IMG/VR virus record: IMGVR_UViG_3300017917_002374
Location: 248,001-312,000 of that record
Direction: 5' to 3' (one strand)
DNA length: 64,000 nt
Shown: one piece after another, positions 24,653 to 51,267 of the stretch
Position numbering within the stretch: the first letter of the stretch is position 1
Layout: every line of letters starts with the position of its first letter
Position numbers and translations under genes: made by a program
Notes under the pieces: model-generated
Databases searched by the model: none
What the model was told of the DNA's origin: nothing
What the model saw: only the letters and a program-made list of their open reading frames with translations

Positions 24653-25090
24653 ATGGCGAGAAATTACGCACAAGGAAAATTTCAAATGCGTAATCCTGCC
24701 AAGTATATTGGCAAAGGACAACCTACTTATCGTTCAGGATGGGAAATGGTGTTCATGCAGTTTTGTGATAACAATCCTGCTATATTAAACTGGGCCAGCG
24801 AAAGTATCAACATTCCATACCGTAATCCGTTTACAGGCAAGAGCACAATTTATGTTCCTGATTTTTTAATCATCTACGAAGATAAAAATGGGCAAAAGCA
24901 TGCAGAAGTAATTGAAATCAAGCCCAGTACAGAATCCACAATGGAAAGTGCTCGCAACACAAGAGATCGTGCTTATGTAGCACTCAATCATGCCAAATGG
25001 GCAGCAGCGCAGGCTTGGTGCAAACAACAAGGCTTGACCTTTAGAGTAATAACAGAGAATCAAATCTTTCATCGGGGTCAAAAGCGGTAA
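24653..25090 (+). CDS. Head completion protein, T4 gp4-like (TnsA-type nuclease fold)
   Basis: NPAKYIG...YRSGWE..FM.FCD.NP.IL.WASE...IPY...Y.PDF...IEIKP...N.AKW.AA..WC. Confidence 0.88.
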   Translation: MARNYAQGKFQMRNPAKYIGKGQPTYRSGWEMVFMQFCDNNPAILNWASESINIPYRNPFTGKSTIYVPDFLIIYEDKNGQKHAEVIEIKPSTESTMESARNTRDRAYVALNHAKWAAAQAWCKQQGLTFRVITENQIFHRGQKR

Positions 25091-26248: not shown

Positions 26249-29200
26249 ATGAGCAAGCACAACGACATTTATAACATCTTGGGTAAATTGAATTCACTTA
26301 AACCTCAAGAAGAAACCAAACCCAGTATTCTAAAAGAGTTTGCTGAACCAAAGCCTGCTGATGTTGTGCAGAATCTAAATGCCAAATACCAAGAGCATAA
26401 ACAGTTGAATGAATATTTTCATTTTGACATGCCTAAAGGCAAGGATCGCGGCCCTCGCGACACAGGCACAGACGAACTAGAGCGTCGTAGCAAGCTAGGC
26501 AAAGATCCATTGGTCAAGCATGGCAAAGAATACAAAGAAAAAGATCGTTACGGTAATGGATACAAAATTGCTGGACCAAAAGGTAACTTACCCGAAGGCG
26601 ATATGGAAGAAGGACCAGCAGATCTATTGGCCGCGATTGAACAAGAAATCAATAACCCAGGTGGCAGTGTTGATAACTTGAGAGATGTCTTGAATGCTAC
26701 TTTTGGTAGCGATAGATCACCTGAATTTAAAAAAGCTCGTGCAGTCATTGGCAAGTATCTTGACTTGGTAGACAACGCTGCAATGGGTAGTGAACAAGAT
26801 GGTATTGCTCCAATGAGAGGTGGCAATATTGCTCGTCATATCCAACAATATGATCTAACTGATTATCTACAAAATGCTGCTGCTATGTTGGATAAAACAG
26901 TTAAAGGTCCAATGGACGAGAGCGGTTTGCAAGCATACCTAGGTAAAAAGAAGTACGGCGAACAAGGTATGAAGGCTCTGCAAAAGGCCGGTCGTGAAGG
27001 CGCCAGCAAAGAAAAGATGGCACAGATTCGTGCCAAGCATGACAAGCTGGACGAGATCAGTCAAGAACTTGCTGGCAATTACATGACAGCAGCAGAAAAA
27101 GACATCAAGTCAAGAAAAGAAAAAGACACATGGGATCCAAAGATCAGCAAGCGTAAAGAAGGTAAGTTCAATGCAGTACTACGCAAGACAGGTACAGTGC
27201 CTACCACAGACAATCCAACACATGGAAAGTTTATTACCAGCAAGATGGATGAAGCTGAAATGGATGAAGACATGCTGAGTCCTAAGCAGAAGAAGTTTGC
27301 AGCACTAGCTGAACCAAAAGATAAAATTACCTACGCAGACAAGATTGCAGGTGCAAAGAAAAAAGACGAAGGTAATGAATTCAGCGGCGAATTAGTAAAA
27401 GCTCGTGCGCAAGGCAAAGACAGCTTTAGTGTGGATGGTAAAGAGTATCCAGTAAAAGAAGGTTTTGAAGATCAACATGATGTTACCAACAAAGGCGAGT
27501 ACGATCAAGAAGGCGACATGGCCAAAGATGATCTCAGCACCATTGAAGATGCTGCTCGTGAGCTAGACAGTATTCTTAGTGCAGACGACAATCTGCCAGA
27601 ATGGGTACAAAGCAAGATCAACAAGGCCATGGACTATCTTGACACAGCAAGAGATTACATGAAAGCCAACACAGACGATGACAATCCTGAAATCAAAGAA
27701 GGCGAATACAAAGACTCTGTTAACAAGAGCAAGGTGCCTGCGTATCAACGCAAGGCCAAAGGTGGAGATTGGAAAGTGAGCACAAAAGATCTAGAGGACG
27801 AGGCTAGCAAGAGCCCAACTGGTCGCGCAGGATTAGAGAAACTGAAACAGCGCATGCGTGATGATGGTGTAATGGAAGGCTTCCCTACTGTAGCAGATGC
27901 CAAGGCTCGTGCAGAAAAAGAAAAAGGCACAGGCAAGTTTGATAAACAAACAACCAGTACAGGAACACGTTATACTCGCAAGCCAGAAACTTATAGCGAT
28001 GATGGCGAAGAGTCAGGTACCAGCGACGCACCTAAAAAGCGCGGCCGACCTAAGAAGCACACAGGCCCAGAGCGTGTGACCAGCAAAGCATGGAAGCACA
28101 AGGGCGGACGCAAGACCAATGAGTCTATTAAGTTGGATACATTTGTTGAAGACACAATTGGCGAACTAGATGCTCTATTATTGAGTGAAAAAGCAGTAAG
28201 CAAACAGCAGCAGAAATTCATGGGCATGGTACATGCCATGCAAAAAGGCGAGAAAGTCAAAGGCGCTAGCAAAGAATTAAAAGCAGCGGCTAAAGGCATG
28301 AGCAAGAAAGATGCCAAGGACTTTGCCAAAACCAAGCACAAAGGTTTACCGTCAAAAGTGACAGAAGGAATTAACTTTGTTGAAATGATGCGTGAGACAG
28401 ATCAGACAGTAGAAGAAATGTTAAACGAACTGCATGCTGAGCTTGATGAATACAAACGTTCAGGACAGATGGGCGACAAATTACGTGACGCTCTTGAACT
28501 GCATCGTCATAGCAAGAACAAGCTCATGGGCGAAACAAAAGAAAAAGAGAGAGACGATTTTTTCTACAATCCTGATGTGCCAGACGACCAGCAGTTGCCT
28601 GCATTACCAGACGAAGTAAAAGTTGATGTAGAGCTAGATGAACTGGCCAAGCTAGCAGGACTAGGTGAAGTCAGTCGCGGTGAATATATCAAACAACAGG
28701 ATGCACAAGCTGAACGTGCAGGCAAAGACAGTTTTAATGCATTTGGTCAAAACTTTGATACAGATCAAGTGCAAGAAGCTTCATGCAACATGACAGCGGA
28801 AGGTCAGTTCTGCCCAGAACACGGTCTAGCAGAATGTGGCAGCATGATGTATGAAAGCAAACAGTCACTAGACGAGTGCGGTGACATGGGGCCTATGGAG
28901 AAGCCAGAAAGCGGCATGAGCGTGAACACCAGTTTTGATACTAAGACCGGTCGTAAAACCATGAGCGTCACAGCCGACGGCGAAGCAGCAGAACAACTGG
29001 CACAGATGTTAAAAATGGCAGGACTGGGACATGATCATTCACACGACCACGGGCCTGAACGTAAGATTGTTATGGTACCAGAAGAAGAAGTAACTGAAGA
29101 GTTTGCAAATGAGCCAAATGAACAGTATGCAGACACACAAACAATAGTGGATGCTGGTCAAGATCTCAATCGTAAGAAAAAACAGTATGCTGACAAGCCC

Positions 29201-29293
29201 AAAGCAGGCGACAATCCAATGGCTACAGAAAATGTTCAACTAGAGGATCGTTTGGCAGCACTATATGATAGTATTAAGGTAAAATCAGAATGA
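26249..29293 (+). CDS. Highly charged multi-module protein (1014 aa), putative prohead core/internal polyprotein
   Basis: K/E/D-rich; AT-hook KKRGRPKK; DUF3008-like KAVSKQQQKFMG...KDFAKTKHKGLP; many [ILVM]xE junctions. Confidence 0.75.
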   Translation: MSKHNDIYNILGKLNSLKPQEETKPSILKEFAEPKPADVVQNLNAKYQEHKQLNEYFHFDMPKGKDRGPRDTGTDELERRSKLGKDPLVKHGKEYKEKDRYGNGYKIAGPKGNLPEGDMEEGPADLLAAIEQEINNPGGSVDNLRDVLNATFGSDRSPEFKKARAVIGKYLDLVDNAAMGSEQDGIAPMRGGNIARHIQQYDLTDYLQNAAAMLDKTVKGPMDESGLQAYLGKKKYGEQGMKALQKAGREGASKEKMAQIRAKHDKLDEISQELAGNYMTAAEKDIKSRKEKDTWDPKISKRKEGKFNAVLRKTGTVPTTDNPTHGKFITSKMDEAEMDEDMLSPKQKKFAALAEPKDKITYADKIAGAKKKDEGNEFSGELVKARAQGKDSFSVDGKEYPVKEGFEDQHDVTNKGEYDQEGDMAKDDLSTIEDAARELDSILSADDNLPEWVQSKINKAMDYLDTARDYMKANTDDDNPEIKEGEYKDSVNKSKVPAYQRKAKGGDWKVSTKDLEDEASKSPTGRAGLEKLKQRMRDDGVMEGFPTVADAKARAEKEKGTGKFDKQTTSTGTRYTRKPETYSDDGEESGTSDAPKKRGRPKKHTGPERVTSKAWKHKGGRKTNESIKLDTFVEDTIGELDALLLSEKAVSKQQQKFMGMVHAMQKGEKVKGASKELKAAAKGMSKKDAKDFAKTKHKGLPSKVTEGINFVEMMRETDQTVEEMLNELHAELDEYKRSGQMGDKLRDALELHRHSKNKLMGETKEKERDDFFYNPDVPDDQQLPALPDEVKVDVELDELAKLAGLGEVSRGEYIKQQDAQAERAGKDSFNAFGQNFDTDQVQEASCNMTAEGQFCPEHGLAECGSMMYESKQSLDECGDMGPMEKPESGMSVNTSFDTKTGRKTMSVTADGEAAEQLAQMLKMAGLGHDHSHDHGPERKIVMVPEEEVTEEFANEPNEQYADTQTIVDAGQDLNRKKKQYADKPKAGDNPMATENVQLEDRLAALYDSIKVKSE

Positions 29294-29928: not shown

Positions 29929-30762
29929 ATGAAAAAATGGTTTTCAATTCTGCTACTATCTCTAGTGGCAACTCCAGCAGCAGCATGGGATCAATGGGCA
30001 CCGCAGCCTATTAATGCTTGTAATGTTCAAGCACCATACGGTTTTCCTAAAGCATCGCGAGGCGATCTTATGGGCAACAGTCAGGCAATATGCCGTCATG
30101 CCTATGTTACATTACATGATAATGTGGCAAAGATTCCTGTGTGGGTCAGCTACACATTGCAACCACAAAATGCATTAGGCTGTGTCCCACGTTCAAACGG
30201 ATTCATGCCAGACAACAGTTTGCCAAAAGGTAAACGTGCAGAATTGTCTGATTATGCCAAGAGTGGATATGACATTGGACATGTGGCTCCTAATGGCGAC
30301 ATGAGTTTTGATAATCGTGCAGAGTTAGAAAGTTTTTTGTTAACCAACATGTATCCACAACTGCCTGGGTTGAATCGTGGCATCTGGAAGTTGTTGGAAA
30401 CTGCAACAAGAGGCTGGGCGGTTCAAAGAGGACATGCGATAGTAGTATACGCTGGGGCTATATATGGCACTGGTGACAAAACCATTGGTGCGAATCAAGT
30501 GGTAGTACCACGTGCGTTTTATAAGATTGTAACAGACACCACTACAGGTGAAGTTATGGCATTCTTGTTCAAGCACGAAGGCGGGCAAGGCAATGACCTG
30601 ACCAAGGTACGTGCAAGTTTAGACACAGTTGAAAAACTCAGCGGTGTGGCTTTTAGTTTTCCTGCTAATGCTAGAGAAGTGCCATTGAATCAAATATGGC
30701 CAGTAGACTATGGAGCACTAACAAATGCAAAAAGAGCCAAATGCAAGGGAACCGGAGAATAA
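29929..30762 (+). CDS. DNA/RNA non-specific endonuclease (NucA/EndoG family) with signal peptide
   Basis: GYDIGHVAP (DRGH-like), SFLLTNMYPQ...NRGIW..LE, VPRAFYKI; N-terminal MKKWFSILLLSLVATPAAA. Confidence 0.9.
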   Translation: MKKWFSILLLSLVATPAAAWDQWAPQPINACNVQAPYGFPKASRGDLMGNSQAICRHAYVTLHDNVAKIPVWVSYTLQPQNALGCVPRSNGFMPDNSLPKGKRAELSDYAKSGYDIGHVAPNGDMSFDNRAELESFLLTNMYPQLPGLNRGIWKLLETATRGWAVQRGHAIVVYAGAIYGTGDKTIGANQVVVPRAFYKIVTDTTTGEVMAFLFKHEGGQGNDLTKVRASLDTVEKLSGVAFSFPANAREVPLNQIWPVDYGALTNAKRAKCKGTGE

Positions 30763-31971: not shown

Positions 31972-32502
31972 TTAGCCCGTTGCTCGCTTATCCTCAATGC
32001 CAAGATATTGATACCAACTTGGATGCTCAATATGTATAGGACGACTTTTCCACTTGTTTACCAACTGGTAATAGTCTGGTTTGTAAGGCATGCGTATGGG
32101 CTTCCATAGCTTGCTACCTTTTCTATGATTGCAGGATTTGCATGCGGTAACACTGTTTTCCCAATTGGTTTTACCGCCAGTGCTGCGTGGAATCACATGA
32201 TCCAGTGTAAGTTCGTCTCGCGGAAAAGTTTCTCTGCAATATTGGCATTGATACAAATCGCGCAGATACAGATTGCTTCTGCTGAAACGAATGTTGCGAC
32301 GTTTGGTAAAGTAGCCTTTGGTTACTGCCACAGCCGGGTAGTGAATGGTCAAATTGGAACTGCGAGCCACTAGATGGTCGTACTCTTCTAGCACAGTTAT
32401 GCGATCTAGAAACATCAGTTTAATAGCATGTTGCCAATTGATTATGCTCAAAGGAAGCACACTTATTGGCTCATAATTGCTGTTGAGTAGCAGGCAGTTC
32501 AT
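31972..32502 (-). CDS. HNH endonuclease (McrA/HNH_5-like)
   Basis: LLLNSNYEP N-terminus; RDLYQCQYC...LTLDHVIPRS.GG...WEN.VTAC..CN..KG. Confidence 0.92.
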   Translation of the reverse strand: MNCLLLNSNYEPISVLPLSIINWQHAIKLMFLDRITVLEEYDHLVARSSNLTIHYPAVAVTKGYFTKRRNIRFSRSNLYLRDLYQCQYCRETFPRDELTLDHVIPRSTGGKTNWENSVTACKSCNHRKGSKLWKPIRMPYKPDYYQLVNKWKSRPIHIEHPSWYQYLGIEDKRATG

Positions 32503-32504
32503 GT

Positions 32505-32516
32505 TAAATATATTTA
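32505..32516. promoter_or_regulatory. Palindromic divergent late promoter TAAATATATTTA
   Basis: TAAATA on both strands in the 16-bp gap between the HNH and terminase ATGs, each 8 nt from its ATG. Confidence 0.7.
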
Positions 32517-32518
32517 CT

Positions 32519-34084
32519 ATGTCAAAAAGTTTAGAAGGTGTAATTGTAAAAAAAGCTCATCAAGTAGAAAGCTACACTGAGCATCAAATTCGTGAAATAG
32601 CCAAATGTGCTGATCCTGTGACAGGTCCTCAGTACTTCATGGACAACTATTTCTACATACAGCATCCTACACAGGGTAGCATACAATACCATCCATTTGA
32701 GTACCAGGAACGCTTGATAGATACCTATCACAATTATAGATTCTCTATCAGTTTAATGCCAAGACAAACGGGGAAATCAACATCAGCTGCTGGATATTTA
32801 TTATGGTATGCAATGTTCATTCCGGACAGCACTATTCTGGTAGCTGCTCACAAATACTTGGGCGCACAGGAAATCATGCAACGTGTTCGTTATGCGTATG
32901 AAAACTGCCCGGATCATATACGAGCAGGGGTAGTAAGCTATAACAAAGGATCAATTGATTTTGATAACGGTAGTCGTATAGTTGCACAAACCACAACAGA
33001 AAACACTGGTCGTGGTATGAGTATATCTCTGTTATACTGTGACGAGTTTGCATTCGTTCGTCCCACAATCGCCAAAGACTTTTGGACCTCCATTACTCCT
33101 ACACTGGCCACTGGTGGTAAGTGTATTATCACCAGCACACCAAACAGCGACGAAGATCAGTTCGCACTGATCTGGAAAGGGGCTAACAAATGTGTAGACG
33201 AGTTTGGCAATGAAACGGAAATAGGAATTAATGGATTCAAGGCTTTTCGTAGCAACTGGAAAGAACACCCAGAGCGTGACGATGCGTGGGCAGCAGAAAT
33301 GAAAGCACAATTAGGCGAAGAACGTTTCCGCCGTGAAATGGATTGCGAGTTCTTGATTTTTGATGAAACTTTGATCAATGCAGTTACACTGTTTGAAATG
33401 GGAGGAATTGATCCTCTGGATCGGCAAGGTCAAGTGCGTTGGTATAAAAAGCCAGAAAAAGACTACACGTATGTTGTGGCGCTTGATCCTAGTTTGGGCA
33501 CAGGTGGAGACCCAGCTGCTATTGAAGTGTTTGAGTTACCTACGTTACGACAGGTTGCAGAATGGCAGCACAACAAAACTCCAGTGCAACGACAGGTTGC
33601 GATTCTTAAAGAAATTACCAGCTATCTAGCGGACACAATTGGCAGCAGCACAGAGGTGTATTATTCAGTAGAAAATAATACCTTAGGAGAGGCAGCACTG
33701 GTTGCCATTGCAGAAATTGGCGAAGAAAACATTCCTGGAATTTTTCTAAGTGAGCCACATCGTGCAGGACACAGCAAATCCTATCGTAAAGGATTTACTA
33801 CTACAAACAAGAGCAAACTAGCAGTTTGCAGCAAATTCAAAAGTCTAGTGGAAACCAAGCGAATGACCATTGCTAGTAAAAATCTCATTAGCGAGCTCAA
33901 GAACTTTGTAGCAGTGGGCACTTCGTTCAAAGCCAAAATAGGCGAAACTGATGATCTAGTGCTAGCCACGCTGCTAGTGGTACGCATGATACAGGTGCTA
34001 AAAGAGTTTGATCAACGACTGGACAATGAAGTTAGAGACACGCTTGAAGACTTTATTGCACCCATGCCCTTTATAATGATTTAG
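32519..34084 (+). CDS. Terminase large subunit (gp17-like)
   Basis: PRQTGKS Walker A, LLYCDEFAF Walker B, IITSTPN, ALDPSLGTGGD and DDLV RNase H-like nuclease motifs. Confidence 0.97.
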   Translation: MSKSLEGVIVKKAHQVESYTEHQIREIAKCADPVTGPQYFMDNYFYIQHPTQGSIQYHPFEYQERLIDTYHNYRFSISLMPRQTGKSTSAAGYLLWYAMFIPDSTILVAAHKYLGAQEIMQRVRYAYENCPDHIRAGVVSYNKGSIDFDNGSRIVAQTTTENTGRGMSISLLYCDEFAFVRPTIAKDFWTSITPTLATGGKCIITSTPNSDEDQFALIWKGANKCVDEFGNETEIGINGFKAFRSNWKEHPERDDAWAAEMKAQLGEERFRREMDCEFLIFDETLINAVTLFEMGGIDPLDRQGQVRWYKKPEKDYTYVVALDPSLGTGGDPAAIEVFELPTLRQVAEWQHNKTPVQRQVAILKEITSYLADTIGSSTEVYYSVENNTLGEAALVAIAEIGEENIPGIFLSEPHRAGHSKSYRKGFTTTNKSKLAVCSKFKSLVETKRMTIASKNLISELKNFVAVGTSFKAKIGETDDLVLATLLVVRMIQVLKEFDQRLDNEVRDTLEDFIAPMPFIMI

Positions 34085-39094: not shown

Positions 39095-39863
39095 CAATGA
39101 GTATCAAAGTCACGAACACAGTCTTGAAGTACTGAATCTCATAAATCGCTACGAAGATTTCATGGACAGTATTAGCACAGTTGCGGACATGGGCTGCGGA
39201 ATAGGTTCAGACATCGCTTGGTGGGCAAATGCTGAGTATGTTGAAACCACGGAAGATGCACAAGGCAACATCTATGAAACTGTGCGAAAAAGAAACTACA
39301 AATGTTATGCTGTGGATAAAAACACACAACAGGTAGACAAAGAAAACCTACCACCAAATGTGAACTTGATCACGGCTGATTTTGAGCGTAGAAGTCTGCC
39401 CATACCTGTGGACATGATCTGGTGTCATAACAGTTTTCAATATGCAGTAAACCCAATGGCCACACTACGACTGTGGAATGAACAAATGAATGAAAATGGT
39501 ATGTTGTACATCTGCATACCATATCAAAGTACGTATCAAAACAACCGTTTGGTGCTGCGTAGTAACAGTTTTAATTATTACAATCACAACTTTCTCAGCA
39601 TGGTGTACATGTTGGCTGTGAATGGATTTGACTGTCGTGATGCGTATTTTCTCAAGCGCCGTGAAAATCCATGGTTACATCTTGCAGTGTACAAAAGTCA
39701 TCATGCTCCTATGGAACCAGCACAAACTTCATGGTATGATCTTGCTGAACGAAATCTAATCAACGACAGCATGAAAAACAGTTTACACAAGTACGGATAC
39801 ATTAGACAAGAAGACATATTGTATGCTTGGTTAGACAAAGATTTTCACTACGTTGAGGATTGA
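39081..39863 (+). CDS. Class I SAM-dependent methyltransferase
   Basis: VADMGCGIG motif I; DMIWCHNSFQY...NP...L..W...M..NG.L.I. Confidence 0.8.
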   Translation: MDHFNNEYQSHEHSLEVLNLINRYEDFMDSISTVADMGCGIGSDIAWWANAEYVETTEDAQGNIYETVRKRNYKCYAVDKNTQQVDKENLPPNVNLITADFERRSLPIPVDMIWCHNSFQYAVNPMATLRLWNEQMNENGMLYICIPYQSTYQNNRLVLRSNSFNYYNHNFLSMVYMLAVNGFDCRDAYFLKRRENPWLHLAVYKSHHAPMEPAQTSWYDLAERNLINDSMKNSLHKYGYIRQEDILYAWLDKDFHYVED

Positions 39864-39888
39864 CAGCTATTCTGTTTTCGCATACAAT
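39860..39888 (+). promoter_or_regulatory. sigma70 promoter for tRNA cluster 1
   Basis: TTGACA-17 bp-TACAAT, 12 nt before the tRNA. Confidence 0.85.
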
Positions 39889-39900
39889 ACACACTTAATA

Positions 39901-39978
<78 letters not shown>

Positions 39979-40023: not shown

Positions 40024-40108
40024 GCGACTGTGGTGAAACAGGTATACACAGCAGACTTAAAATCTGCCGCTGCAAGGCGTGCCGGTTCGATTCCGGCCAG
40101 TCGCACCA
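40024..40108 (+). tRNA. tRNA-Leu(TAA)
   Basis: GCGACTG/CAGTCGC-A-CCA; GCAGA-CT TAA AA-TCTGC; long variable arm. Confidence 0.93.
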
Positions 40109-40114
40109 AGATTT

Positions 40115-40191
40115 CTGACCATAGCTCAGTTGGATAGAGCAACAGCCTTCTAAGCTGTGGGTCGGGGGTTCGAATCCCTCTGGTCAGGCCA
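40115..40191 (+). tRNA. tRNA-Arg(TCT)
   Basis: CTGACCA/TGGTCAG-G-CCA; ACAGC-CT TCT AA-GCTGT. Confidence 0.93.
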
Positions 40192-40267
40192 ACAGATAAA
40201 TAAACTTATGAACAAGCTCTACACTACTGCACGAATACGTAACTATCACACTCAGTGATGGCGTCTT

Positions 40268-40357
40268 CCCACGGTAGCTCAAGGAGAGCAGGAGGCCTTA
40301 TAAGCCTTTCGTCCAGATAAGACCCAGGATGCGGTTCGATTCCGCACCGTGGGACCA
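40268..40357 (+). tRNA. Atypical tRNA with TAT anticodon (nominal Ile) and long variable arm
   Basis: CCCACGG/CCGTGGG-A-CCA; D arm GCTC-AAGGA-GAGC; GAGGC-CT TAT AA-GCCTT; ~21-nt extra arm; T arm TGCGG-TTCGATT-CCGCA. Confidence 0.8.
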
Positions 40358-40363
40358 ATTCAT

Positions 40364-40390
40364 AAAAAAAGCCCCTTTCGGGGCTTTTTG
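40364..40390. terminator. Bidirectional intrinsic terminator
   Basis: AAAAAAAGCCCC-TTTC-GGGGCTTTTT between the convergent tRNA cluster and autotransporter gene. Confidence 0.9.
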
Positions 40391-40398
40391 TTTGGCGC

Positions 40399-42729
40399 TT
40401 AGAATCCTATTCTAAGCATCACACTGCCTGAGGTGCTTTGAATATCTTGACTGTGCAAATGCACAGCACCTAGAACAACAGACACCTTTTCAGAAAGTTG
40501 CTTGCCCACACCAACACGAGACACAGTGAAGTTGGTTGAAGTTTGTGCTACTTCTCCATAAACATTCATGGTACCAAATCTTCGGTCGTAACGTAAACCA
40601 TACTCGTGACTACGTGTGTTTTGATCCACTGCTGCATAGTTCATAGCAGTGATTGCACTACCAGATTCAGCAACTGCATCTCTGCGATTGTTCTCATGTC
40701 TAGCACCCACAAAAGGTCTAAAGCCCACTAGGTCTGGAGTGTACAGTCTAGCACTGAGCCAATAGTCGTTGCCGTTGGTTCTGCTGCTGTTTGAGTAGCC
40801 CAATGCTGGCAGGCTATGACCGGCTGTGAACACATTGTTGGCATAACCCAACTGTGAACTAACAATCCAGTTTCTAGCCACCCAGGTTGAGTTCAACGCA
40901 AAAATATCCTTGGTCAAACTGCCAGTGGCATCATTGCCGCCCATGTTACTATCAAAGCGACTCAAAGATAAACCTACCACTAGGTTTTCACGCACCAGTT
41001 TGTCTAATCCAAATCCATAACGTGAACTCATGATCAGATAGTTATCAAAACTGTAGTCTGCAGTTTTCTCACCAAACGCATAGAAAGAAACAGTTCTAGC
41101 TGAATCTAAATTGCCTTTGAAACTGAGATCTCCATTGATTATAGAATGTCTATTTAACAAGTTATCAGAACTGAGTAGATTGGCCAAACTGTTTGTTTGC
41201 GACAACACAGCATACTGATCAATTCTTGTGTAATAGCTTTGATCTTCACTGGTAGTAGAAACTGTGTTAAAAGTACTGGTAGTAGTGACCACTTGATTGC
41301 TGGTACTGGTAGTTGTTACCGGAGTACCATTGGTAGTGGTAGTTGTACCATCACTGTATGTGGTAACAGTTGTCGGAGTGGTTGTGGTTGTGGTTGTTAC
41401 AGGTGTGGTCTGAGTTATAACTCTGGTCACAGGAGTTGTGGTAACCACTGTGGTATTACGATTGATTTCAAGAGTTTTTTCAGTTTGTGCACCTCTACTG
41501 TCTGTGACAGTGGTCACACTGGTTGGTGTACCTGCTGTGTCTACAGTTGTACTGGTTGTGGTACCATAACTCACTGAAGTTGACACAATGTTTGCCCCGG
41601 GTGCAGTGCTGACCACAGTAGGAGTCATACTAGATACTGAACCTGGTGTACCAGGGTTGGCAATAGTGCCAGAGCCTGTTGCTACACTGGTTGTGGTGTT
41701 GTTACTGTCATAGTAGTAGGTAACTTCACCAATTTGCACACTGTCACAGGCCAGAGTGCCTAGTGCTGCTTGACAGGCTGCTACTGAACCATACTGATCA
41801 ATGGCCTTGATGCTTGGAAATGTGATAAAGTAATACACATAAGCGTTGGTATTGTTGATAGTGATCATGCTGGTTTGGGTATAACGACCACTAACGTTTT
41901 CCAATGTGGTACTTTGGTTGGCAGTGATTTCTGTCCAAGTCACACCGTCGTTTGATCCATACAGTGTAAACTTGGTAGGGTCACGTGGTACAAAGTCGTT
42001 GGCTGTGGTAAATTTAATACCGTCAATGACCTTGCCAGCATTTAGTGTGATAGTAAAACCAGCATTGGCACGATCAAAATTTAGATACTTGCTGCCACTG
42101 GTTCCATCCACTGCCTGCCCGGCACCTTCGCCTGCTGGACTGTTGTTGCTGGTTGGTGTGATATTGGCAATCATGCTTCCAGTAATTGCTGTGGGATTTG
42201 GTGTGCTGCTTCCTCCGCCGCCGCTGCTGGCTGTTTGTCCTGCTCCTAATGGAGTGGTGCTGGCCCAGGTGTATGAGCTGGCATCAGAACTGGACACACT
42301 GGTATCCATGTTGGTGAAACTGCCACTGGATCCGTAAGCATAGCCTGCACTGGTAGTGATCACTGTACCAAAGAATCCTGATCCAATGTAGAACAGAGCA
42401 TCTGGCCCAATTGCTTGTAGTGTTCCGGTGTTGTGAACCACTTGTGCAAGAGTACCATTTGCGTTGTACAATCCTAGACCGTATGTGCCTGGATTGGTGG
42501 TTGAGTTGAAAAATGCAAAATACTGTCCACTGCTGACCGTAGGATGTTGAAAATTCATATCGTATGGGGCAATGAAATTACTAGCATTCAGGGTGGTGCC
42601 AGACCAGTAATATTGAACGTCAAAAATTTGGTTAGTGCTGAAATGTCCGTCTGTGATATCTGCTTTAGCTGGAAGAATGGATAATAGAAAAACAGCAAGA
42701 GTCACAGCGACTCTGCTGAAGAATTTCAT
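40399..42729 (-). CDS. Autotransporter-like outer-membrane protein (signal peptide, discoidin/F5-8-like domain, Thr-rich stalk, beta-barrel)
   Basis: MKFFSRVAVTLAVFLLSILPAKA signal; AVDGTSGSKYLNF...FTTAND...RDP..F.LYGSNDG..WT domain; Thr-rich linker; ~250-aa amphipathic beta-strand C-terminus ending LRIGF; AGGAG RBS. Confidence 0.8.
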   Translation of the reverse strand: MKFFSRVAVTLAVFLLSILPAKADITDGHFSTNQIFDVQYYWSGTTLNASNFIAPYDMNFQHPTVSSGQYFAFFNSTTNPGTYGLGLYNANGTLAQVVHNTGTLQAIGPDALFYIGSGFFGTVITTSAGYAYGSSGSFTNMDTSVSSSDASSYTWASTTPLGAGQTASSGGGGSSTPNPTAITGSMIANITPTSNNSPAGEGAGQAVDGTSGSKYLNFDRANAGFTITLNAGKVIDGIKFTTANDFVPRDPTKFTLYGSNDGVTWTEITANQSTTLENVSGRYTQTSMITINNTNAYVYYFITFPSIKAIDQYGSVAACQAALGTLACDSVQIGEVTYYYDSNNTTTSVATGSGTIANPGTPGSVSSMTPTVVSTAPGANIVSTSVSYGTTTSTTVDTAGTPTSVTTVTDSRGAQTEKTLEINRNTTVVTTTPVTRVITQTTPVTTTTTTTPTTVTTYSDGTTTTTNGTPVTTTSTSNQVVTTTSTFNTVSTTSEDQSYYTRIDQYAVLSQTNSLANLLSSDNLLNRHSIINGDLSFKGNLDSARTVSFYAFGEKTADYSFDNYLIMSSRYGFGLDKLVRENLVVGLSLSRFDSNMGGNDATGSLTKDIFALNSTWVARNWIVSSQLGYANNVFTAGHSLPALGYSNSSRTNGNDYWLSARLYTPDLVGFRPFVGARHENNRRDAVAESGSAITAMNYAAVDQNTRSHEYGLRYDRRFGTMNVYGEVAQTSTNFTVSRVGVGKQLSEKVSVVLGAVHLHSQDIQSTSGSVMLRIGF
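41250..41700 (-). repeat. Thr/Ser/Pro-rich low-complexity stalk
   Basis: TTPVTTTTTTTPTTVTTYSDGTTTTTNGTPVTTT-type sequence; boundaries approximate. Confidence 0.8.
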
Positions 42730-46495: not shown

Positions 46496-46993
46496 ATGCA
46501 AACAATTGAAGTTTTTTGGTATAAAAATATTCTGGAAGTGCAGATTATAGATCCTGCTATTTTTACCACAAGGAACAGGATCGTGTACAGTAGAACCATC
46601 AAAGTCTATCAGGGTATAGACAATCCCATACATGTTGTGACTAAAAATCAAGATCAAAAGCAGGTGGATTTAACTGGATATGATTTACAAGTGGACATAC
46701 AGGATCCAGAAAATGAAATAACTGTGGAAACTTTCACAGTGAATTTTGTGGTACAAAACAAAGGGCTAGGCACTTTTACTATACCTGCAGGCATAGTTAA
46801 CGGACTAGATCAAAGACACTATGAACTGACAGTTAAGCTGATCAACATTAGCTCAGCAGATGAAACTCCATTGTATATAGACGATAACTACGGACTTAGA
46901 GTACCACTACAAGTGCTCAGCGGATTTTATTCAAATACTCCGGTTGGCTCCACCAACATTGAAGGTGTTATTGATGCAGGATTGCTAGGATGA
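46496..46993 (+). CDS. Virion structural protein (BppU-like adaptor?)
   Basis: TAAATA at 46466; IKVYQGIDNPI...KNQDQK.VDLTG pattern; heads the fibre operon. Confidence 0.55.
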   Translation: MQTIEVFWYKNILEVQIIDPAIFTTRNRIVYSRTIKVYQGIDNPIHVVTKNQDQKQVDLTGYDLQVDIQDPENEITVETFTVNFVVQNKGLGTFTIPAGIVNGLDQRHYELTVKLINISSADETPLYIDDNYGLRVPLQVLSGFYSNTPVGSTNIEGVIDAGLLG

Positions 46994-49900
46994 CCACAGC
47001 TAATATAAAAATAACCAAGGTATTGTTGGGCAGAGGTAACACAGCAATCAGTGCCAACTATACTGGAGTAATGGGCGAAGTGACCATGGACACTACGCTT
47101 AAAACTCTGCGAGTGCATGATGGTGTGATTGTGGGCGGAACCAGACTGGCCACCTATGCTGAATTGTCTAATGTGGCTCTTGGCAATGTTGATCTTTCAG
47201 GGTATGCCACTACATCGCAGATCACAGCAGCCAATGCTGCAATCTCAGCACTACAAAGCAATGCCGCTGCACAAGCAGTCACACTGAACACACTGTTGGG
47301 TAATGCAGTTAGTCAACAGACTACCTTGATTGATCTCATTGCCAACGCCACAACACAAGCACAACAACTGGCAAACACTGGTAGCACCTATAGCAATGCA
47401 AATGTAAAAAGTTATCTTGCAGCGTTTGATGGCAATATCTTGCCCTCGGCCAATGTCGTATACAGTTTAGGTAGTGCAACACAGCAATGGAAAGATCTAT
47501 GGGTCAGTAATGCCACAATATATTTAAACTCAGTACCATTAGGACTGGACGCCACAGGCAATTTGACCTTTGATGGCAATCCATTGGTCAGTTATATCAA
47601 TGGCAATTTGAGCGTTGGCGGCAACAATGTAAACATCAACGGTATAAGTGCTGGTCAAGTGGTTGCCGGCAATTTGATTCTGACACTTACAGATACCACA
47701 ACAATTGATGTTGGCACTGTGGTTGGACCCGCAGGTGCTACTGGAGCACCTGGTGCAGCCGGTGCCACTGGACCACAAGGACCACAAGGCAATGCCGGTG
47801 CCACTGGACCACAAGGCATACAGGGCAACACAGGTGCCGCTGGACCAACTGGACCACAAGGTATACAGGGCAACACAGGACCTACTGGGCCTCAAGGCAT
47901 ACAGGGCAACACAGGCGCACAAGGACCACAAGGCATACAAGGTCCGGCTGGTGCCACGGGCGCACAGGGTATCAGTGTTACACTGGTTGGCAATGTGGCT
48001 ACCAGTGGCAACCTACCGCTAACAGGTAATGCAGGCGAAGCATACATTGTTACTAGCAGTGGTAATCTATTTTTCTGGAACAGCAATTTAAGTGTTTGGG
48101 CAGATATTGGTCCTATCGTAGGGCCACAAGGCGAAGCTGGTCCACAAGGACCCACTGGTGCCACAGGGCCACAAGGTGAAACTGGACCTGCAGGGCCAAC
48201 TGGCCCACAGGGCATACAGGGCAATGTTGGGCCACAAGGCCCACAGGGTATTCAAGGCAATACCGGACCCACTGGTGCCACAGGACCGCAAGGCGCACAA
48301 GGACCTGCAGGCAATACCATTGTGGGATGGAGTGTGGATGTAAACAACCACCTGGTTCCTAACACAGACAACCTACAAGACCTAGGCACACCTACCAGCA
48401 GAGTTAGACACATTTATGTAGGCCCAGGCTCTATCACAGTGGGCAGTTCAGTGATCACGGAATCGGCCACAGGCAAACTGGTGTTGCCTGGGGTGACCAG
48501 AGGCGTAAGCTACACCATTGATGAAGTGGAAGAAAAAGGCGATCAGAATCATGTGTTCAACGCACCGCCTGTGATTGTTGATGGCGGGCACTTTGCTGTG
48601 CTACAGGGAGTGATTGCACCACCTGGCGGATACCAGGCACCTGAATACAGTGTGGATCAACTGAATGATGACGGTGAGATTGATGGTATTACCATAGACA
48701 GTGCTGGTGCTGGTATTGACCAAGCTGTGGCTGCCAAGATGCGTGAATTCATGCGAGCCTATGTGGGCAATGATCCGGATCCTATCACAAACTTTAATGC
48801 TTCGGACTGGATACAGATTCCGTTCACAGTGAGTACAGAAGCTGCGGATGTCGAGTACGAAAACGCAGGTGCAGACCTAGGTGACTTCTCCATAGATGGC
48901 AGTGTACTGGAAGCAGACGAAGCCACAATCAGAACCAACGATGGCGACCTGACACTGGAATCAGACAGTGATGTGTTTGTAAAATCTTCTGGTGGCACTC
49001 ACATGTGGGAATTTAGCACCAATGGCCGGCTGTATCTTCCTGCCACTGGCACAATAGAATTTCCAGACGGGTCCATACAAATCACTGCCAACGCAGGCGG
49101 GGGTGGTGGCGGCAACATAGCCGGGCTTACCAGCTCTGTGGGCAATCAAGAAGCATCTCACGGATCAACTGTTTACAGCTTGACTCTTAACAGTGGCAAC
49201 GATGACAATGCTATAATCCAGCTATATAAAGGCACCGGAAACGACAATCCAGCCATATCAATTGGACAGGAAATTGGCGGGTTCCACCAGGCCAATGTTG
49301 TGGCAATTGGTAACTACGATGTTGGGTACAACTCTCTACCAGGAGGCGTGTACATTGGCTATGGAGCAGGCTACAACAATGTAGAAAGCCCGCAAGGTTT
49401 ACATGCCATTGCTATTGGATCCAAGGCAGCTTATACCTTTGCCACAAACAACAGTATCACACTCAATGCAACTGGTAACGATTTAACCCCAGATGAATCA
49501 GGTTTGTTTATCAAACCAATTCGCGAAGAACAGTATGATGATGCTATCTTATATTATAATGTACAGAGCGGAGAAGTAACCTATGCAGCTAATCCTGGCA
49601 GCGGAGCCTCAATAGGTAGCACTGCACCAACCGCAATAAATGGTCGTTTGTGGTACAACACTGAAGATGGCCGTACCTATGTGTATGCCTTGGACACCTG
49701 GATTGATGCCAATCCCCCAGTGGTTCCGGGCAACATGGTTGGCTATGGTCAGGATGGTAACATCACACTCAACGAAGATGCCAGAATCAACTATGCCAAT
49801 GGTGCAAGCATAATAAACAGCGTTTACGGTGATGAACAAGTAGCAGAATTCTTGAGTGCGTACACTGGTAACATTGGTAAAATAGGTTCTGATCCGCTGG

Positions 49901-51267
49901 CTATCACAGCCGCTAACATTAGATTGACCAGCGACAATGAAACCTGGGCCTTTAGCTCAACAGGCAATATCGTATTCCCTGACGGAACCCAACAGGCCAC
50001 TGCCTACACAGGCGGAGATGGCGGCAGCAGCTATGGCAATGTAGAACTAGCAGCCTTTATGAGCGACTATCAAGGTAATATCTATATCAACAGCGAAGGC
50101 AGTGGCTTGATTATAGATGCCGCAGGTGATCGTCGTGTAGGCTTTATGAAATACTTTGGCATTGAAGCCGGCTTTGTTCATGCCAATGGCCCAACAAAAT
50201 CCATTCCATTCCGTATTGGGCGAGTGGCTGCGGATGATATCACACAGGCAAACAGTTCAGTATTCACAACAGAAATCTTTATCAGCAATGTTGGCAAGAT
50301 TGGTATTCACAATACCACCCCTGCATACGATTTAGATCTAACTGGAAACGCTAGAGTAAGTGGTAGCCTCCTAATAGGCACCAACTCAACAATCAGCAAC
50401 GATGGTGAGTTCAGACTCTGGGCAACAGACACAGACATCACGGTGTATCGCAATGGTCAAGATGGCTACGGCGTCAAAGCCGGAAACATTGAAACCTATA
50501 CTGACAATGTTCTAAGAACCGTAACCAATAGCCAGGGCTTTGAACTCAAGACTGGTAACATAACTATCCCCAACGACAAAGGAGTGGTGTTTGCTAACGG
50601 TGTGAACATACTCAGCACCATTGTTGGAATAACCAGCATCAACACATCAGTTACAACCAGCTCCATCAACGATGAAAGTGGAGATTTCAGCTATGGCTCA
50701 TTGTCATACGACTACGCGGTAAACGGTGTCACATCTGGTGGGTTCACCATAGACTACTCTGCTCCGCTGGTACATGGCAATGTGGATGTGAATGTTGGCA
50801 ATGTGATTGCCACCAATATCAGTGTCAGTGGCAACCTAACTGTTGATAACACATTGGTAAACAGAGTGTATTTGCTTGAAGCCTATGCCAGTGTGACCTA
50901 CACCTTGCCAGGTAGTTTCACTGAAGATGTGTGTAGATACAGCGTTGTGAGTAATGCCGTCAATGTACCAAGTGCGTGGTTCAACACCTCAACTTATACA
51001 TTCACACCTCTAAAGGCTGGCTACTGGGAAATTACCGCCGCTTATGATGTTTATAGAAATGCTGAAGCAAGTATGGTGATTAAGAAAAATACCACGATTG
51101 TGGCTTCAGCTGGCAGTTTCAATGCAGTGGCCCAACAGGTAACAAAAATCATCTATCTAAATGGTTCAACTGATTATGTACAAATTTACAATTTTGGTGG
51201 GGCCGCACTAGAAAGATCACAATATGATGGCAGGTCTTGGTTCCAGGCACGATGGGTAGGCGCATGA
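46990..51267 (+). CDS. Collagen-containing tail fibre (1425 aa) with C-terminal C1q-like domain
   Basis: N-terminal GRG...[16 protein letters not shown]; two G-X-Y blocks; FPDG.Q.TA motifs; C-terminal [11 protein letters not shown]...YLNGSTDYV. Confidence 0.85.
47725..48312 (+). repeat. Collagen-like Gly-X-Y repeats (two blocks)
   Basis: [16 protein letters not shown] units; DNA repeats such as GGACCACAAGG and CAGGGCAACACAGG. Confidence 0.95.

Follow-up and report, generated by a model that had tools for sequence, protein, structure and literature searches.

A conserved phage tRNA for the AUA codon that carries an extra hairpin

A giant freshwater phage (IMG/VR record IMGVR_UViG_3300017917_002374) carries a real and strongly conserved tRNA with a plain UAU anticodon, whose best reading is that of an isoleucine-accepting, TilS-independent decoder of AUA, and which bears an extra small hairpin that is apparently undescribed. 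The loop of this hairpin reads YAGAUAA in all members of the family and resembles the anticodon loop of the main isoleucine tRNA, tRNA-Ile(GAU). The gene was studied within a window of 64,000 nucleotides (positions 248,001 to 312,000 of the record), where it closes a promoter-to-terminator tRNA operon that starts with a tRNA-Ile2(CAU)-like gene. An earlier note, made from the sequence alone, had described it as a UAU tRNA on a class-II-like body, lying beside a conventional tRNA-Ile2(CAU), and had proposed that it could be a TilS-independent AUA decoder, an allo-tRNA charged with another amino acid or a decoy for anticodon nucleases. The observation itself is confirmed, while the interpretation is supported only in part: the first of the three proposals is the best supported one, but the body is not of the class II type.

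ARAGORN called a tRNA-Ile(tat) of 90 nt, with the anticodon at position 32, and the Rfam tRNA model (RF00005) scored the same gene at 48.2 bits against a gathering score of 29 (E = 2.2e-08). The minimum free energy fold corresponds to the cloverleaf, at -35.1 kcal/mol (z = -3.56 against shuffles). The sequence shows a 7-bp acceptor stem (CCCACGG/CCGTGGG) that includes A4-U69, followed by U8 A9, a D stem GCUC/GAGC closing the 5-nt loop AAGGA, a T stem UGCGG/CCGCA, A73 and an encoded CCA. The features of the operon are given in the table below.

Features of the tRNA operon and of the 90-nt tRNA(UAU), in window coordinates
Coordinates	Strand	Feature	Support
39860..39888	+	sigma-70-type promoter-like site, TTGACA-17 nt-TACAAT, 12 nt upstream of the first tRNA of the cluster	11 of 12 consensus matches; a consensus match only, function not shown
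39901..39978	+	tRNA(CAU), tRNA-Ile2-like (needs lysidine from host TilS to read AUA); has G27.U43	ARAGORN; Rfam, 59.5 bits; 81.3% identity over 100% of its length to the E. coli gene annotated tRNA-Ile, that is ileX/ileY
40024..40108	+	tRNA-Leu(UAA), ordinary class II	ARAGORN; Rfam
40115..40191	+	tRNA-Arg(UCU)	ARAGORN; Rfam
40268..40357	+	90-nt tRNA(UAU): acceptor 40268-40274 with 40347-40353; D arm 40277-40289; A73 at 40354; encoded CCA at 40355-40357	ARAGORN; Rfam; fold; family alignment
40291..40291	+	G that pairs with C40325 (a 26:44-like closing pair) and encloses both the anticodon arm and the extra hairpin	GC 36, GU 3, AU 2, CG 2, unpaired 3; a single pair with few independent changes, so moderate support
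40292..40308	+	anticodon arm: 5-bp stem whose first pair G27.U43 never varies, loop CUUAUAA, anticodon UAU at 40299-40301	G.U in 46 of 46; the other four pairs covary; U34 in 105 of 105 tRNA-like metagenome hits when position 34 was left free
40311..40323	+	extra hairpin: 3-bp stem (40311-40313, GUC, with 40321-40323, GAC) and 7-nt loop CAGAUAA (40314-40320), YAGAUAA in all members	100% paired; 3-4 pair types at each position; loop unchanged in searches that did not specify it
40324..40329	+	tail CCAGGA; its last five nucleotides are read here as the ordinary variable loop 44-48, with a nearly invariant G at the position-46 equivalent	family alignment
40330..40346	+	T arm, 5-bp stem and loop UUCGAUU	Rfam; family alignment
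40370..40393	.	terminator-like hairpin AGCCCC-UUUC-GGGGCU followed by UUUUGUUU and preceded by an A run, between the tRNA operon and the convergent gene 40399-42729 (-)	sequence; -16.8 kcal/mol, z = -3.7; not listed by the consensus scan that gave the promoter-like site

The gene is not a one-off, since more than 90 distinct relatives were found in uncultivated phage and metagenome contigs and in five betaproteobacterial MAG contigs. Conversely, none was found in cultured phages, as blastn of the tRNA against 50,697 phage records returned no homologue, and there was no match in E. coli genomes, whereas the cluster as a whole matched only generic tRNAs. A strict hairpin/T-arm pattern found nothing in 185,579 bacterial species genomes, and a looser pattern found 16 places of which only 5 are real, all lying in tRNA arrays on the betaproteobacterial MAG contigs, which may be phage DNA. 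The earlier note had named homologues with an unconserved anticodon or unconserved stems as the outcome that would count against it, and the comparison went the other way. In an alignment of 46 distinct homologues, 97.7-98.1% of cells paired, against 69% in shuffles and 36-48% with slid partners, with a covariation score of 0.73 against 0.16. All five helices covary, including the three pairs of the hairpin. A further 48 distinct sequences came from metagenomes.

Anticodon and hairpin are coupled in both directions. A search on the hairpin and T arm, with no anticodon specified, gave 76 loci that were all UAU, and a search on the D arm and anticodon, with no hairpin specified, gave 57 loci that all had the same hairpin. 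When position 34 was left free, the 15 chance hits carried A 5, G 5, T 3 and C 2, in contrast to the uniform T of the tRNA-like hits. The possibility of a decaying or non-functional gene, a pseudo-tRNA with a chance insertion, could be invoked because its Rfam score is the lowest of the six tRNAs in the window and because no transcripts were seen. However, this view is already contradicted by the conservation of helices, anticodon and hairpin loop across phages whose flanking genes differ, and was considered extremely unlikely.

The alignment led to one refinement of the structure. The possible sixth anticodon-stem pair of the earlier note (G24-U42) is less well supported, being 83% paired with no double changes, and the better model is a long-range pair between G24 (40291) and C58 (40325). 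This leaves a 5-bp anticodon stem and places the hairpin between positions 43 and 44, with five to six nucleotides following it, and not at the class II site. The remainder is a class I body, with a 7/5 acceptor/T branch and a UAGCUC...GAGC D arm, and only the extra hairpin recalls class II. Moreover, when the anticodon loop was excluded and the hairpin excised, the cores of the family were closest to ordinary class I phage tRNA(UAU) genes, which were the best hit in 24 of 46 cases and were 5.9-fold enriched among the top ten. The family differs from these genes by a 13-nt hairpin, apparently inserted, and by a D loop cut to 5-7 nt. Since plain class I tRNA(UAU) genes are common in phage contigs, the unusual part is the architecture and not the UAU anticodon. 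Descent from the neighbouring 90-nt tRNA-Ser(GCU) was considered because the two are often adjacent, but the D arm and the nearest-neighbour analysis point to class I tRNA(UAU) instead.

The codon usage of the phage is in line with an isoleucine meaning for AUA. The codon occurs 294 times, that is 14.6 per 1000 codons and 25% of the AUN isoleucine codons. In relatives that also carry the tRNA, AUA aligns with ATA 87, ATT 58, ATC 35, Val 11% and Leu 9%, and the isoleucine profile beats that of valine by 91 and that of leucine by 203 log-likelihood units. AUA exchanges with AUU and AUC, not with Leu (UUA or CUA) or Ser codons. It should be considered that the alignment positions are not independent, because several relatives are counted per site, and that the test shows what AUA is meant to encode and not what this tRNA carries. 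Of the isoleucine identity nucleotides outside position 34 in the E. coli set (PMC9976931), A73, A35, U36, A37 and U12-A23 are invariant in the family, while A38 is present in most members, with some U or C. G27.U43, also invariant, is found in E. coli tRNA-Ile2 (PMC2500205), but it is not specific, as it occurs in 16% of the other tRNAs in these loci. Several minor E. coli IleRS determinants are not conserved or are absent: 4:69 and 29:41 vary freely (C4-G69 and C29-G41 in E. coli, A4-U69 and G29-C41 in the window), and of the D-loop elements G16, D20 and D21 the 5-nt loop of the window lacks positions 16, 17 and 20. Charging by IleRS and the reading of AUA but not AUG were not assayed, nor were isotype-specific tRNAscan-SE models applied, and a U34 anticodon could misread AUG.

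An allo-tRNA, as proposed in the earlier note, or a mischarged tRNA, in which the extra arm would let an anticodon-blind synthetase (LeuRS or, less likely, SerRS) charge it so that AUA is read partly as Leu or Ser, is not supported, although it is not excluded biochemically. In its favour, the tRNA has A73 and an extra arm, and E. coli LeuRS ignores the anticodon and depends on A73 plus the D/T-loop tertiary contacts G18-U55 and G19-C56 (PMC9976931), whose G18 G19 and T-loop nucleotides are present here. In addition, the nematode nev-tRNA-Ile(UAU) is charged only with Leu (PMC3333845), and IleRS of the E. coli type dislikes U34. Nevertheless, the hinge determinants of E. coli LeuRS are not conserved: position 15 is A, U, G or C without a matching change at 48 (A15-U48 being required), and A20a is absent. 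Serine identity in bacteria involves G73, G1-C72, G2-C71 and a long variable stem, whereas this family has A73 in all members, C1-G72 in 36 of 46, C2-G71 in 38 of 46 (an antideterminant for E. coli SerRS) and a hairpin stem of only 3 bp. TyrRS needs U35, and here the residue is A35. The class I body and its relatives, together with the codon data, also argue against this view, and proteome-wide substitution at 1.5% of codons would burden the phage. It was judged very unlikely.

The genomic context gave no dedicated partner. All-against-all clustering of ORFs in 93 family loci and 111 control loci found no protein present in more than 26 of the 93 family loci (some top clusters may be spurious ORFs across conserved tRNA genes, which was not checked), and no defence or partner gene is consistently nearby. 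No aaRS or tRNA-modification gene was found among 40 of the 48 ORFs of the window scanned against Pfam, the eight left out being short (77-120 aa). Four RNA runs gave zero coverage of 40204-40347, and the coverage on the neighbouring tRNAs comes from similar tRNAs of other organisms; this result is uninformative and is not evidence of absence. In the absence of RNA reads, splicing of the arm, named in the earlier note as a way to obtain a normal tRNA-Ile, was not examined, but the 13-nt hairpin has no features of a bacterial group I tRNA intron. The tRNA-Ile2(CAU)-like gene in the same operon makes the UAU tRNA look redundant in this phage, although only about 20% of the larger family loci show such a partner, CAU tRNAs having been sorted into Met, fMet and Ile2 only by a crude similarity cut-off.

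For the nuclease decoy of the earlier note there is no evidence for or against. In a broader form, the RNA could be tRNA-shaped but mainly not used for decoding, acting as a decoy, sponge or inhibitor for a host tRNA-targeting defence nuclease or as a ligand for another tRNA-binding protein, with the hairpin loop as the bait because it mimics the tRNA-Ile(GAU) anticodon loop. Compatible with this are the conservation of the hairpin loop, stricter than that of positions 32 and 38 of the real anticodon loop, the documented phage tRNAs that neutralise tRNA-cleaving defences (for example PMC11464382 and PMC10264068), the judgement that most allo-tRNA(UAU) species are not used in translation (PMC5389517), and the presence of the tRNA-Ile2(CAU)-like gene. 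Against it, everything needed for translation is kept under selection (UAU in all members, A37, a canonical T loop, the 7/5 branch, A73 and usually an encoded CCA), the gene sits inside ordinary tRNA arrays where it is often the only visible AUA reader, and the phage uses AUA heavily. This alternative was considered unlikely.

Altogether, the best explanation is that of a functional phage tRNA that decodes AUA, most likely as isoleucine, with a probability of roughly 0.65. In this model, it would be transcribed with tRNA-Ile2(CAU), tRNA-Leu(UAA) and tRNA-Arg(UCU) from one unit, these tRNAs reading A-ending codons that the 43% GC phage uses heavily, and its genomically encoded UAU needs no lysidine, making it independent of host TilS. 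It belongs to a conserved lineage, seen so far only in uncultivated phage contigs and phage-like tRNA arrays, that appears to derive from ordinary class I phage tRNA-Ile(UAU). The analysis demonstrates the gene, its fold and covariation, the strict coupling of the UAU anticodon with the hairpin, the invariant hairpin loop, the class I ancestry and the isoleucine-like behaviour of AUA codons, whereas expression, charging by host IleRS (from A73, A35-U36-A37-A38, U12-A23 and G27.U43) and use on the ribosome are deduced. The suggestion of the earlier note that such a tRNA escapes tRNA-Ile2 limitation is plausible, but it was not put to the test.

No role could be assigned to the hairpin, whose loop must be read sequence-specifically. 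The leading guess, held with low confidence, is that it presents a second isoleucine-type "anticodon loop", GAU-A-A in the correct register but with A instead of U33, which would help IleRS, or an anticodon-loop enzyme such as the t6A37 machinery, to accept a tRNA whose real U34 is a poor IleRS determinant; E. coli IleRS charges tRNA-Ile2(UAU) at about 1% of the LAU form (PMC3575796). A structural brace replacing the lost D-loop nucleotides, or a shield against tRNA-targeting nucleases, are the alternatives. In its boldest form, which is improbable though not excluded, the hairpin is a cis-acting mimic of the tRNA-Ile(GAU) anticodon loop, whose positions 32-38 its loop equals at six of seven places, in the same register; only U33 is replaced by A, which would prevent a U-turn and so use as an anticodon. 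Linker plus stem spans about five levels, the same as the 5-bp anticodon stem beside it, and the two loops could therefore lie side by side at the tip of the anticodon branch. The mimic would then supply the G34-type identity signal that IleRS (or the t6A37 machinery) wants while the true UAU loop would do the decoding, so that a phage could deliver a TilS-independent AUA reader into hosts whose IleRS rejects U34. Such splitting of identity and decoding loops was not found described for any tRNA. Kissing between the hairpin loop (AUAA) and the anticodon loop (UUAU) was rejected on geometry, since the two hairpins are joined by a 1-2-nt linker and cannot stack end to end, and the hairpin was also rejected as an alternative true anticodon arm because its stem never exceeds 3 bp and position 33 is A.

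AUA is the one sense codon for which bacteria normally depend on an essential anticodon-editing enzyme, TilS, and the known ways around it need a co-adapted IleRS and ribosome. The large family described here, most of whose contigs are probably from fresh water (sample types were checked only for this phage), suggests a portable, tRNA-borne solution to that problem, or a new way to protect or disguise a tRNA during infection. It also adds a tRNA architecture, an insertion between positions 43 and 44 combined with a minimal D loop, that gene finders label simply "tRNA-Ile" and for which full-text literature searches found no description, although the literature covered was incomplete and this is not proof of novelty. 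If the hairpin proves to be an identity or shielding element, it would give a compact design rule for engineering orthogonal or nuclease-resistant tRNAs and would bear on how tRNA identity can be separated from decoding. If it proves to be only a structural brace, the finding remains a well-supported new structural variant within a known functional class.

Among known systems, the ordinary class I phage tRNA-Ile(UAU) genes (74-79 nt), found here in at least 112 IMG/VR contigs, share the UAU anticodon in a CUUAUAA loop, A73, the 7/5 branch and a similar D stem, and some share acceptor and T stems with members of the family. They have, however, a 4-5-nt variable loop, a normal 7-9-nt D loop and a mixed 27:43 pair (G.U in 14 of 99). 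The bacterial tRNA-Ile2(UAU) of Mycoplasma mobile, lactobacilli and Bifidobacterium (PMC3575796) is likewise a TilS-independent AUA decoder with a genomically encoded UAU, but those are cellular class I tRNAs, and in M. mobile a co-adapted IleRS (Arg865) and ribosome do the work, whereas the present tRNA is phage-borne, has an extra hairpin and must work with whatever IleRS the host has. The E. coli-type tRNA-Ile2 (CAU to LAU; ileX/ileY) reads AUA and has G27.U43, A37, A38, A73 and U12-A23, but it needs lysidine from TilS for both charging and decoding, with no extra hairpin and a normal D loop; the claim of the earlier note that a tRNA of this type lies beside the UAU gene holds. The nematode nev-tRNA-Ile(UAU) (PMC3333845) also places a UAU anticodon on a tRNA with an extra arm and targets a rare codon, but nev-tRNAs are eukaryotic, derive from tRNA-Leu, have a true class II body and are charged with Leu, while the tRNA studied here is of phage origin and has class I tRNA(UAU) genes, not tRNA-Leu, as nearest neighbours. 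The allo-tRNA(UAU) species (PMC5389517) are long-armed bacterial or phage tRNAs found in metagenomes with a non-Leu/Ser/Tyr anticodon, UAU being a predominant one. They have a defining 12-bp acceptor branch arranged 8/4 or 9/3, with a tRNA-Sec-like long D stem with a tetraloop, a long variable stem and Ser identity, in place of which this tRNA has a 7/5 branch (both stems covarying), a 4-bp D stem with a 5-nt loop and a 3-bp hairpin. Finally, class II tRNAs (Leu, Ser, Tyr) also have an extra stem-loop between the anticodon and T arms, but their arm lies after positions 44-45, leaves one to three nucleotides before the T stem and has a short and variable loop, and their D loops are large, whereas here the hairpin lies before position 44, five to six nucleotides follow it, the D loop is minimal and the 7-nt loop is invariant.

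A 90-nt tRNA gene with the anticodon TAT was called by ARAGORN, as one of six tRNA genes in the window, and the Rfam tRNA model matched positions 40268-40354 with 48.2 bits (threshold 29, E = 2.2e-08), its alignment treating 18 nucleotides of the variable region as an insertion. The single-sequence fold is the cloverleaf at -35.1 kcal/mol (z = -3.56). No RNA reads were found to cover the gene, but each structural detail listed in the earlier note is present in the sequence, namely the 7-bp acceptor stem with A4-U69, the 5-nt D loop AAGGA, the anticodon loop CUUAUAA, the hairpin GUC-CAGAUAA-GAC, A73 and an encoded CCA. The feature is real, and what the note described was accurately observed.

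The window is 100% identical to part of a 354,959-bp IMG/VR contig (L004; numbers preceded by L are the labels given here to contigs and loci). It encodes gp32-, UvsX- and UvsY-like proteins, a T4-type large terminase, a tail sheath, a gp15-like protein and collagen-like tail fibres. UvsX is 60-70% identical to that of jumbo myophages of Sinorhizobium, Agrobacterium, Vibrio, Xanthomonas and enterobacteria, and although the host was not identified, near-identical DNA occurs in pond, lake, river, freshwater and soil metagenomes. The tRNA(UAU) is the last gene of a compact unit that starts with a promoter-like site, followed by tRNA(CAU), tRNA-Leu(UAA), tRNA-Arg(UCU) and a 76-nt spacer, and that is closed by a GC-rich hairpin with a U tract. 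The tRNA(CAU) shares 81% identity over its whole length with the E. coli gene annotated tRNA-Ile (ileX/ileY), which makes the description of this neighbour in the note as a conventional tRNA-Ile2 a reasonable one. The spacer is conserved among close relatives and contains GAUAAAUAAA, which recalls the T4 late-promoter box TATAAATA. The UAU tRNA might have its own late promoter.

Coordinates of the tRNA unit, of other genes in the window and of unusual tRNA and tmRNA genes in other contigs
Contig	Position	Strand	Feature
Window	39860-39888		Promoter-like site, TTGACA-17-TACAAT
Window	39901-39978		tRNA(CAU)
Window			tRNA-Leu(UAA)
Window			tRNA-Arg(UCU)
Window; same place in L001, L007, L020, L031	40195-40204		Late-promoter-like motif in the 76-nt spacer
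Window	40268-40357	+	tRNA(UAU), 90 nt
Window	40291		G preceding the anticodon stem (G24)
Window	40325		Second tail nucleotide (C58)
Window	40370-40393		GC-rich hairpin with a U tract
Window	31972-32502 (-), 24653-25090 (+), 29929-30762 (+)		HNH endonuclease gene lying directly upstream of, and overlapping the start of, the large terminase gene (32477-34084); the structural region also holds a TnsA-like endonuclease and a non-specific DNA/RNA endonuclease
Window	26249-29293		1014-aa ORF, highly conserved
Window	46990-51267, 51509-55498, 58447-62592	+	Three very large proteins (1329-1425 aa) with the N-terminal domain of the major tropism determinant (Mtd_N), one also with collagen repeats
L096; L103; L104; L106; L111; L112	12674-12762; 6648-6736; 1338-1426; 684-772; 2792-2880; 1269-1357	-; -; +; +; +; +	Second kind of long tRNA(UAU), 89 nt
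L095, L097, L100, L105, L109, L110, L115, L119-L121, L123, L126, L127, L129, L131	L097: 5160-5236		tRNA-like genes with no D arm on the 5' side (L097: Rfam 31.2 bits)
L099; L113; L118; L128; L102	6654-6745; 5582-5673; 345-437; 5746-5837; 1281-1373	-; -; +; -; +	tRNA(UAU), 92-93 nt, with a different extra arm
L015; L023; L082; L089; L083; L088; L090; L094	12859-12948; 4143-4242; 614-701; 6002-6089; 7744-7827; 1598-1682; 428-512 and 520-605; 1069-1165 and 2302-2384	-; +; -; -; -; +; +; +	Other long-armed tRNAs with anticodons that are not Leu, Ser or Tyr
L002, with similar genes in L006, L010, L046	L002: 3632-3709	L002: +	tRNA-Leu (UAG, CAA, UAA) of only about 78 nt
L133, L240			tRNAs with a CUA anticodon, called tRNA-Pyl by ARAGORN
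L011	6552-7061	+	tmRNA with the tag ANDEQFLMVA
L097	11699-12047	-	tmRNA, 93 bits in Rfam

The note had proposed that homologues and covariation in the extra arm be sought, and had named an unconserved anticodon or unconserved stems as the mark of a pseudo-tRNA; neither was observed. Pattern searches were performed in four ways, each leaving a different part of the molecule unspecified. The D arm plus CUUAUAA returned 11 viral contigs, all with a 90-nt tRNA(UAU), and the hairpin loop plus tail plus T arm, with no anticodon specified, returned 76 loci with 30 distinct sequences, all UAU. The D arm plus UUAUA, with no hairpin specified, returned 57 loci, all of which, including the one new locus, carry the same hairpin. 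When position 34 was left free, every genuine viral hit had U34, and in a partial scan of metagenomes 105 of 105 tRNA-like hits had T, while the 15 matches lacking the flanking helices, which serve as an internal control, had A 5, G 5, T 3 and C 2. In a fifth search, which specified CUUAUAA, U43, a long variable region, the T loop and ACCA but not the hairpin loop, every molecule recovered with this architecture had YAGAUAA. On 46 distinct sequences, 97.7-98.1% of base-pair cells are standard pairs, against 69% in shuffles and 36-48% with slid partners, and 20 to 21 of the 25 pairs show changes on both sides; the three hairpin pairs are 100% paired, with three or four pair types each. No member was found among 50,697 cultured phage records or in E. 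coli. Among 185,579 species genomes only five contigs carry it, all dense tRNA arrays (13-28 tRNAs) on betaproteobacterial MAG contigs, three of them labelled Azoarcus, which may be phage DNA binned with a host.

The note had placed the anticodon on a class-II-like body, but the anatomy is that of a class-I tRNA with an insertion. The acceptor/T branch is 7/5 and the D arm is UAGCUC-loop-GAGC, as in Ile, Met and Val-type class-I tRNAs. After removal of the hairpin and exclusion of the anticodon loop from the comparison, the cores are closest to ordinary 74-79-nt phage tRNA(UAU) genes (best hit in 24 of 46 cases, 5.9-fold enriched among the top ten), some pairs sharing the whole acceptor stem. 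Pair counting also revises the 6-bp anticodon stem considered possible in the note, because G24 pairs better with C58 in the tail (GC 36, GU 3, AU 2, CG 2, that is 93.5% paired) than with U42, the nucleotide after the stem (83% paired, with no double changes). If this is the 26:44 pair, the 13-nt hairpin and its short linkers lie between positions 43 and 44, and the last five tail nucleotides are then the normal variable loop, with a nearly invariant G at the position-46 equivalent. This placement is moderately supported, since it rests on a single pair with few independent changes. The D loop is 5-7 nt throughout the family, against 7-9 nt in the class-I relatives.

Other kinds of tRNA(UAU) and tRNA-like genes were seen in phage contigs. 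The 89-nt genes, called by ARAGORN but below the Rfam threshold, have a 3-bp D stem with a 4-nt loop, and a 4-nt spacer appears to pair with the tail (for example CAGC with GCUG) so that it encloses two hairpins, the UAU arm and a 4-bp hairpin with the loop YAGAUYR; the shared YAGAU suggests a link with the family studied here. The genes without a 5' D arm, which ARAGORN does not call, have a CUUAUAA loop, a normal T arm, acceptor pairing and ACCA, and a D-arm-like hairpin (GUAR-NUGG-UUAC) instead follows the anticodon arm. The 92-93-nt genes (Rfam scores of 58-59 bits) have a normal D arm and the extra arm CCCU-NNCA-AGG. Long-armed UAU tRNAs thus exist in several unrelated designs in phage contigs. 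The same phage tRNA arrays hold long-armed tRNAs with the anticodons Pro UGG and GGG, Glu UUC, Lys UUU, Thr UGU, Cys GCA and Asn GUU, and a 97-nt UCA tRNA that may be an opal suppressor. The short tRNA-Leu genes lack the long variable arm expected of tRNA-Leu, the CUA tRNAs, also found in phage tRNA arrays, may be amber suppressors, and the phage-borne tmRNA genes lie near the tRNA arrays.

The meaning of AUA in these phages was examined through codon usage and substitution. The 48 long ORFs of the window use AUA 294 times, that is, 14.6 per 1000 codons and 25% of the AUN Ile codons, and UUA and AGA, which match the other tRNAs of the operon, are also used heavily. The Mtd_N proteins are rich in AUA (17-28 each), whereas highly conserved genes such as gp32, UvsX and the 1014-aa ORF have 0-1. 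When window genes were aligned codon by codon with seven related contigs that also carry the tRNA (70-83% nucleotide identity), the 288 AUA pairings included ATA 87, ATT 58 and ATC 35, together with Val 11%, Leu 9% and Met 3%. With ATA partners excluded and with substitution profiles taken from the same alignments, the Ile profile fits best, by 91 log-likelihood units over Val and 203 over Leu; the positions are not independent, but the margin is large. This shows that these phages "intend" AUA as Ile, although it does not show what this tRNA carries. The note had suggested three possibilities, namely a TilS-independent AUA decoder escaping cleavage or limitation of host tRNA-Ile2, an allo-tRNA charged with another amino acid, perhaps Leu, and a decoy for anticodon nucleases. 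Its interpretation is partly supported: the first is the best-supported reading, the second is disfavoured and the third is not excluded.

The extra hairpin combines a freely changing stem (for example GUC/GAC, AUC/GGU, GGG/CCC, CGG/CCG, GGC/GCC, CUA/UAG, CAA/UUG and CGA/UCG) with a loop that is YAGAUAA in every member seen, while positions 32 and 38 of the real anticodon loop vary. Part of that sample was collected with the loop in the search pattern, but the searches that did not specify it agree. The loop equals the anticodon loop of tRNA-Ile(GAU), which reads Y-U-G-A-U-A-A, at six of seven positions and in the same register, differing only at U33. Linker plus stem spans about the same number of levels as the 5-bp anticodon stem beside it, and the two loops could therefore lie side by side. 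Three explanations can be considered, which the present data do not separate: an identity or modification-enzyme mimic that compensates for U34, a structural brace for the reduced core, or a shield or bait directed at tRNA-targeting defence nucleases. No partner protein is conserved nearby, and no aaRS or tRNA-modification gene was found among the 40 window ORFs scanned.

While the gene, its fold and its conservation come directly from the analysis, the amino acid that it accepts is inferred from its sequence; charging, modification and decoding were not assayed, and tRNAscan-SE isotype models, which the note had suggested, were not applied. A73, U12-A23, A35, U36, A37 and G27.U43 are invariant in the family, and A38 is usual. 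These features agree with the E. coli Ile identity set, but the minor determinants C4-G69 and C29-G41 are not conserved, and D-loop G16, D20 and D21 are absent. A73, C2-G71 (an antideterminant) and the 3-bp stem argue against Ser, the E. coli hinge determinants for Leu (A15-U48 and A20a) are not conserved, and Tyr would require U35, where A35 is found here.

In comparison with known systems, the family fails on the 8/4 or 9/3 branch that defines allo-tRNA. The G27.U43 pair also occurs in E. coli tRNA-Ile2, but it is found in 16% of the other tRNAs in these loci. E. coli IleRS charges a UAU version of tRNA-Ile2 at only about 1% of the lysidine form, and a UAU tRNA entering a host with such an enzyme therefore has a charging problem to solve. 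Ordinary class-I tRNA(UAU) genes are common in viral contigs, with at least 112 found, so that a UAU anticodon is not unusual in phages. It is the architecture that is unusual, and no description of it was found in the literature searched, which was incomplete. "Class-II-like body" should be replaced by class-I tRNA-Ile(UAU) with a hairpin inserted before position 44 and a minimal D loop, in which the main interest is the strict coupling of one anticodon with an invariant extra loop that looks like the other isoleucine anticodon.
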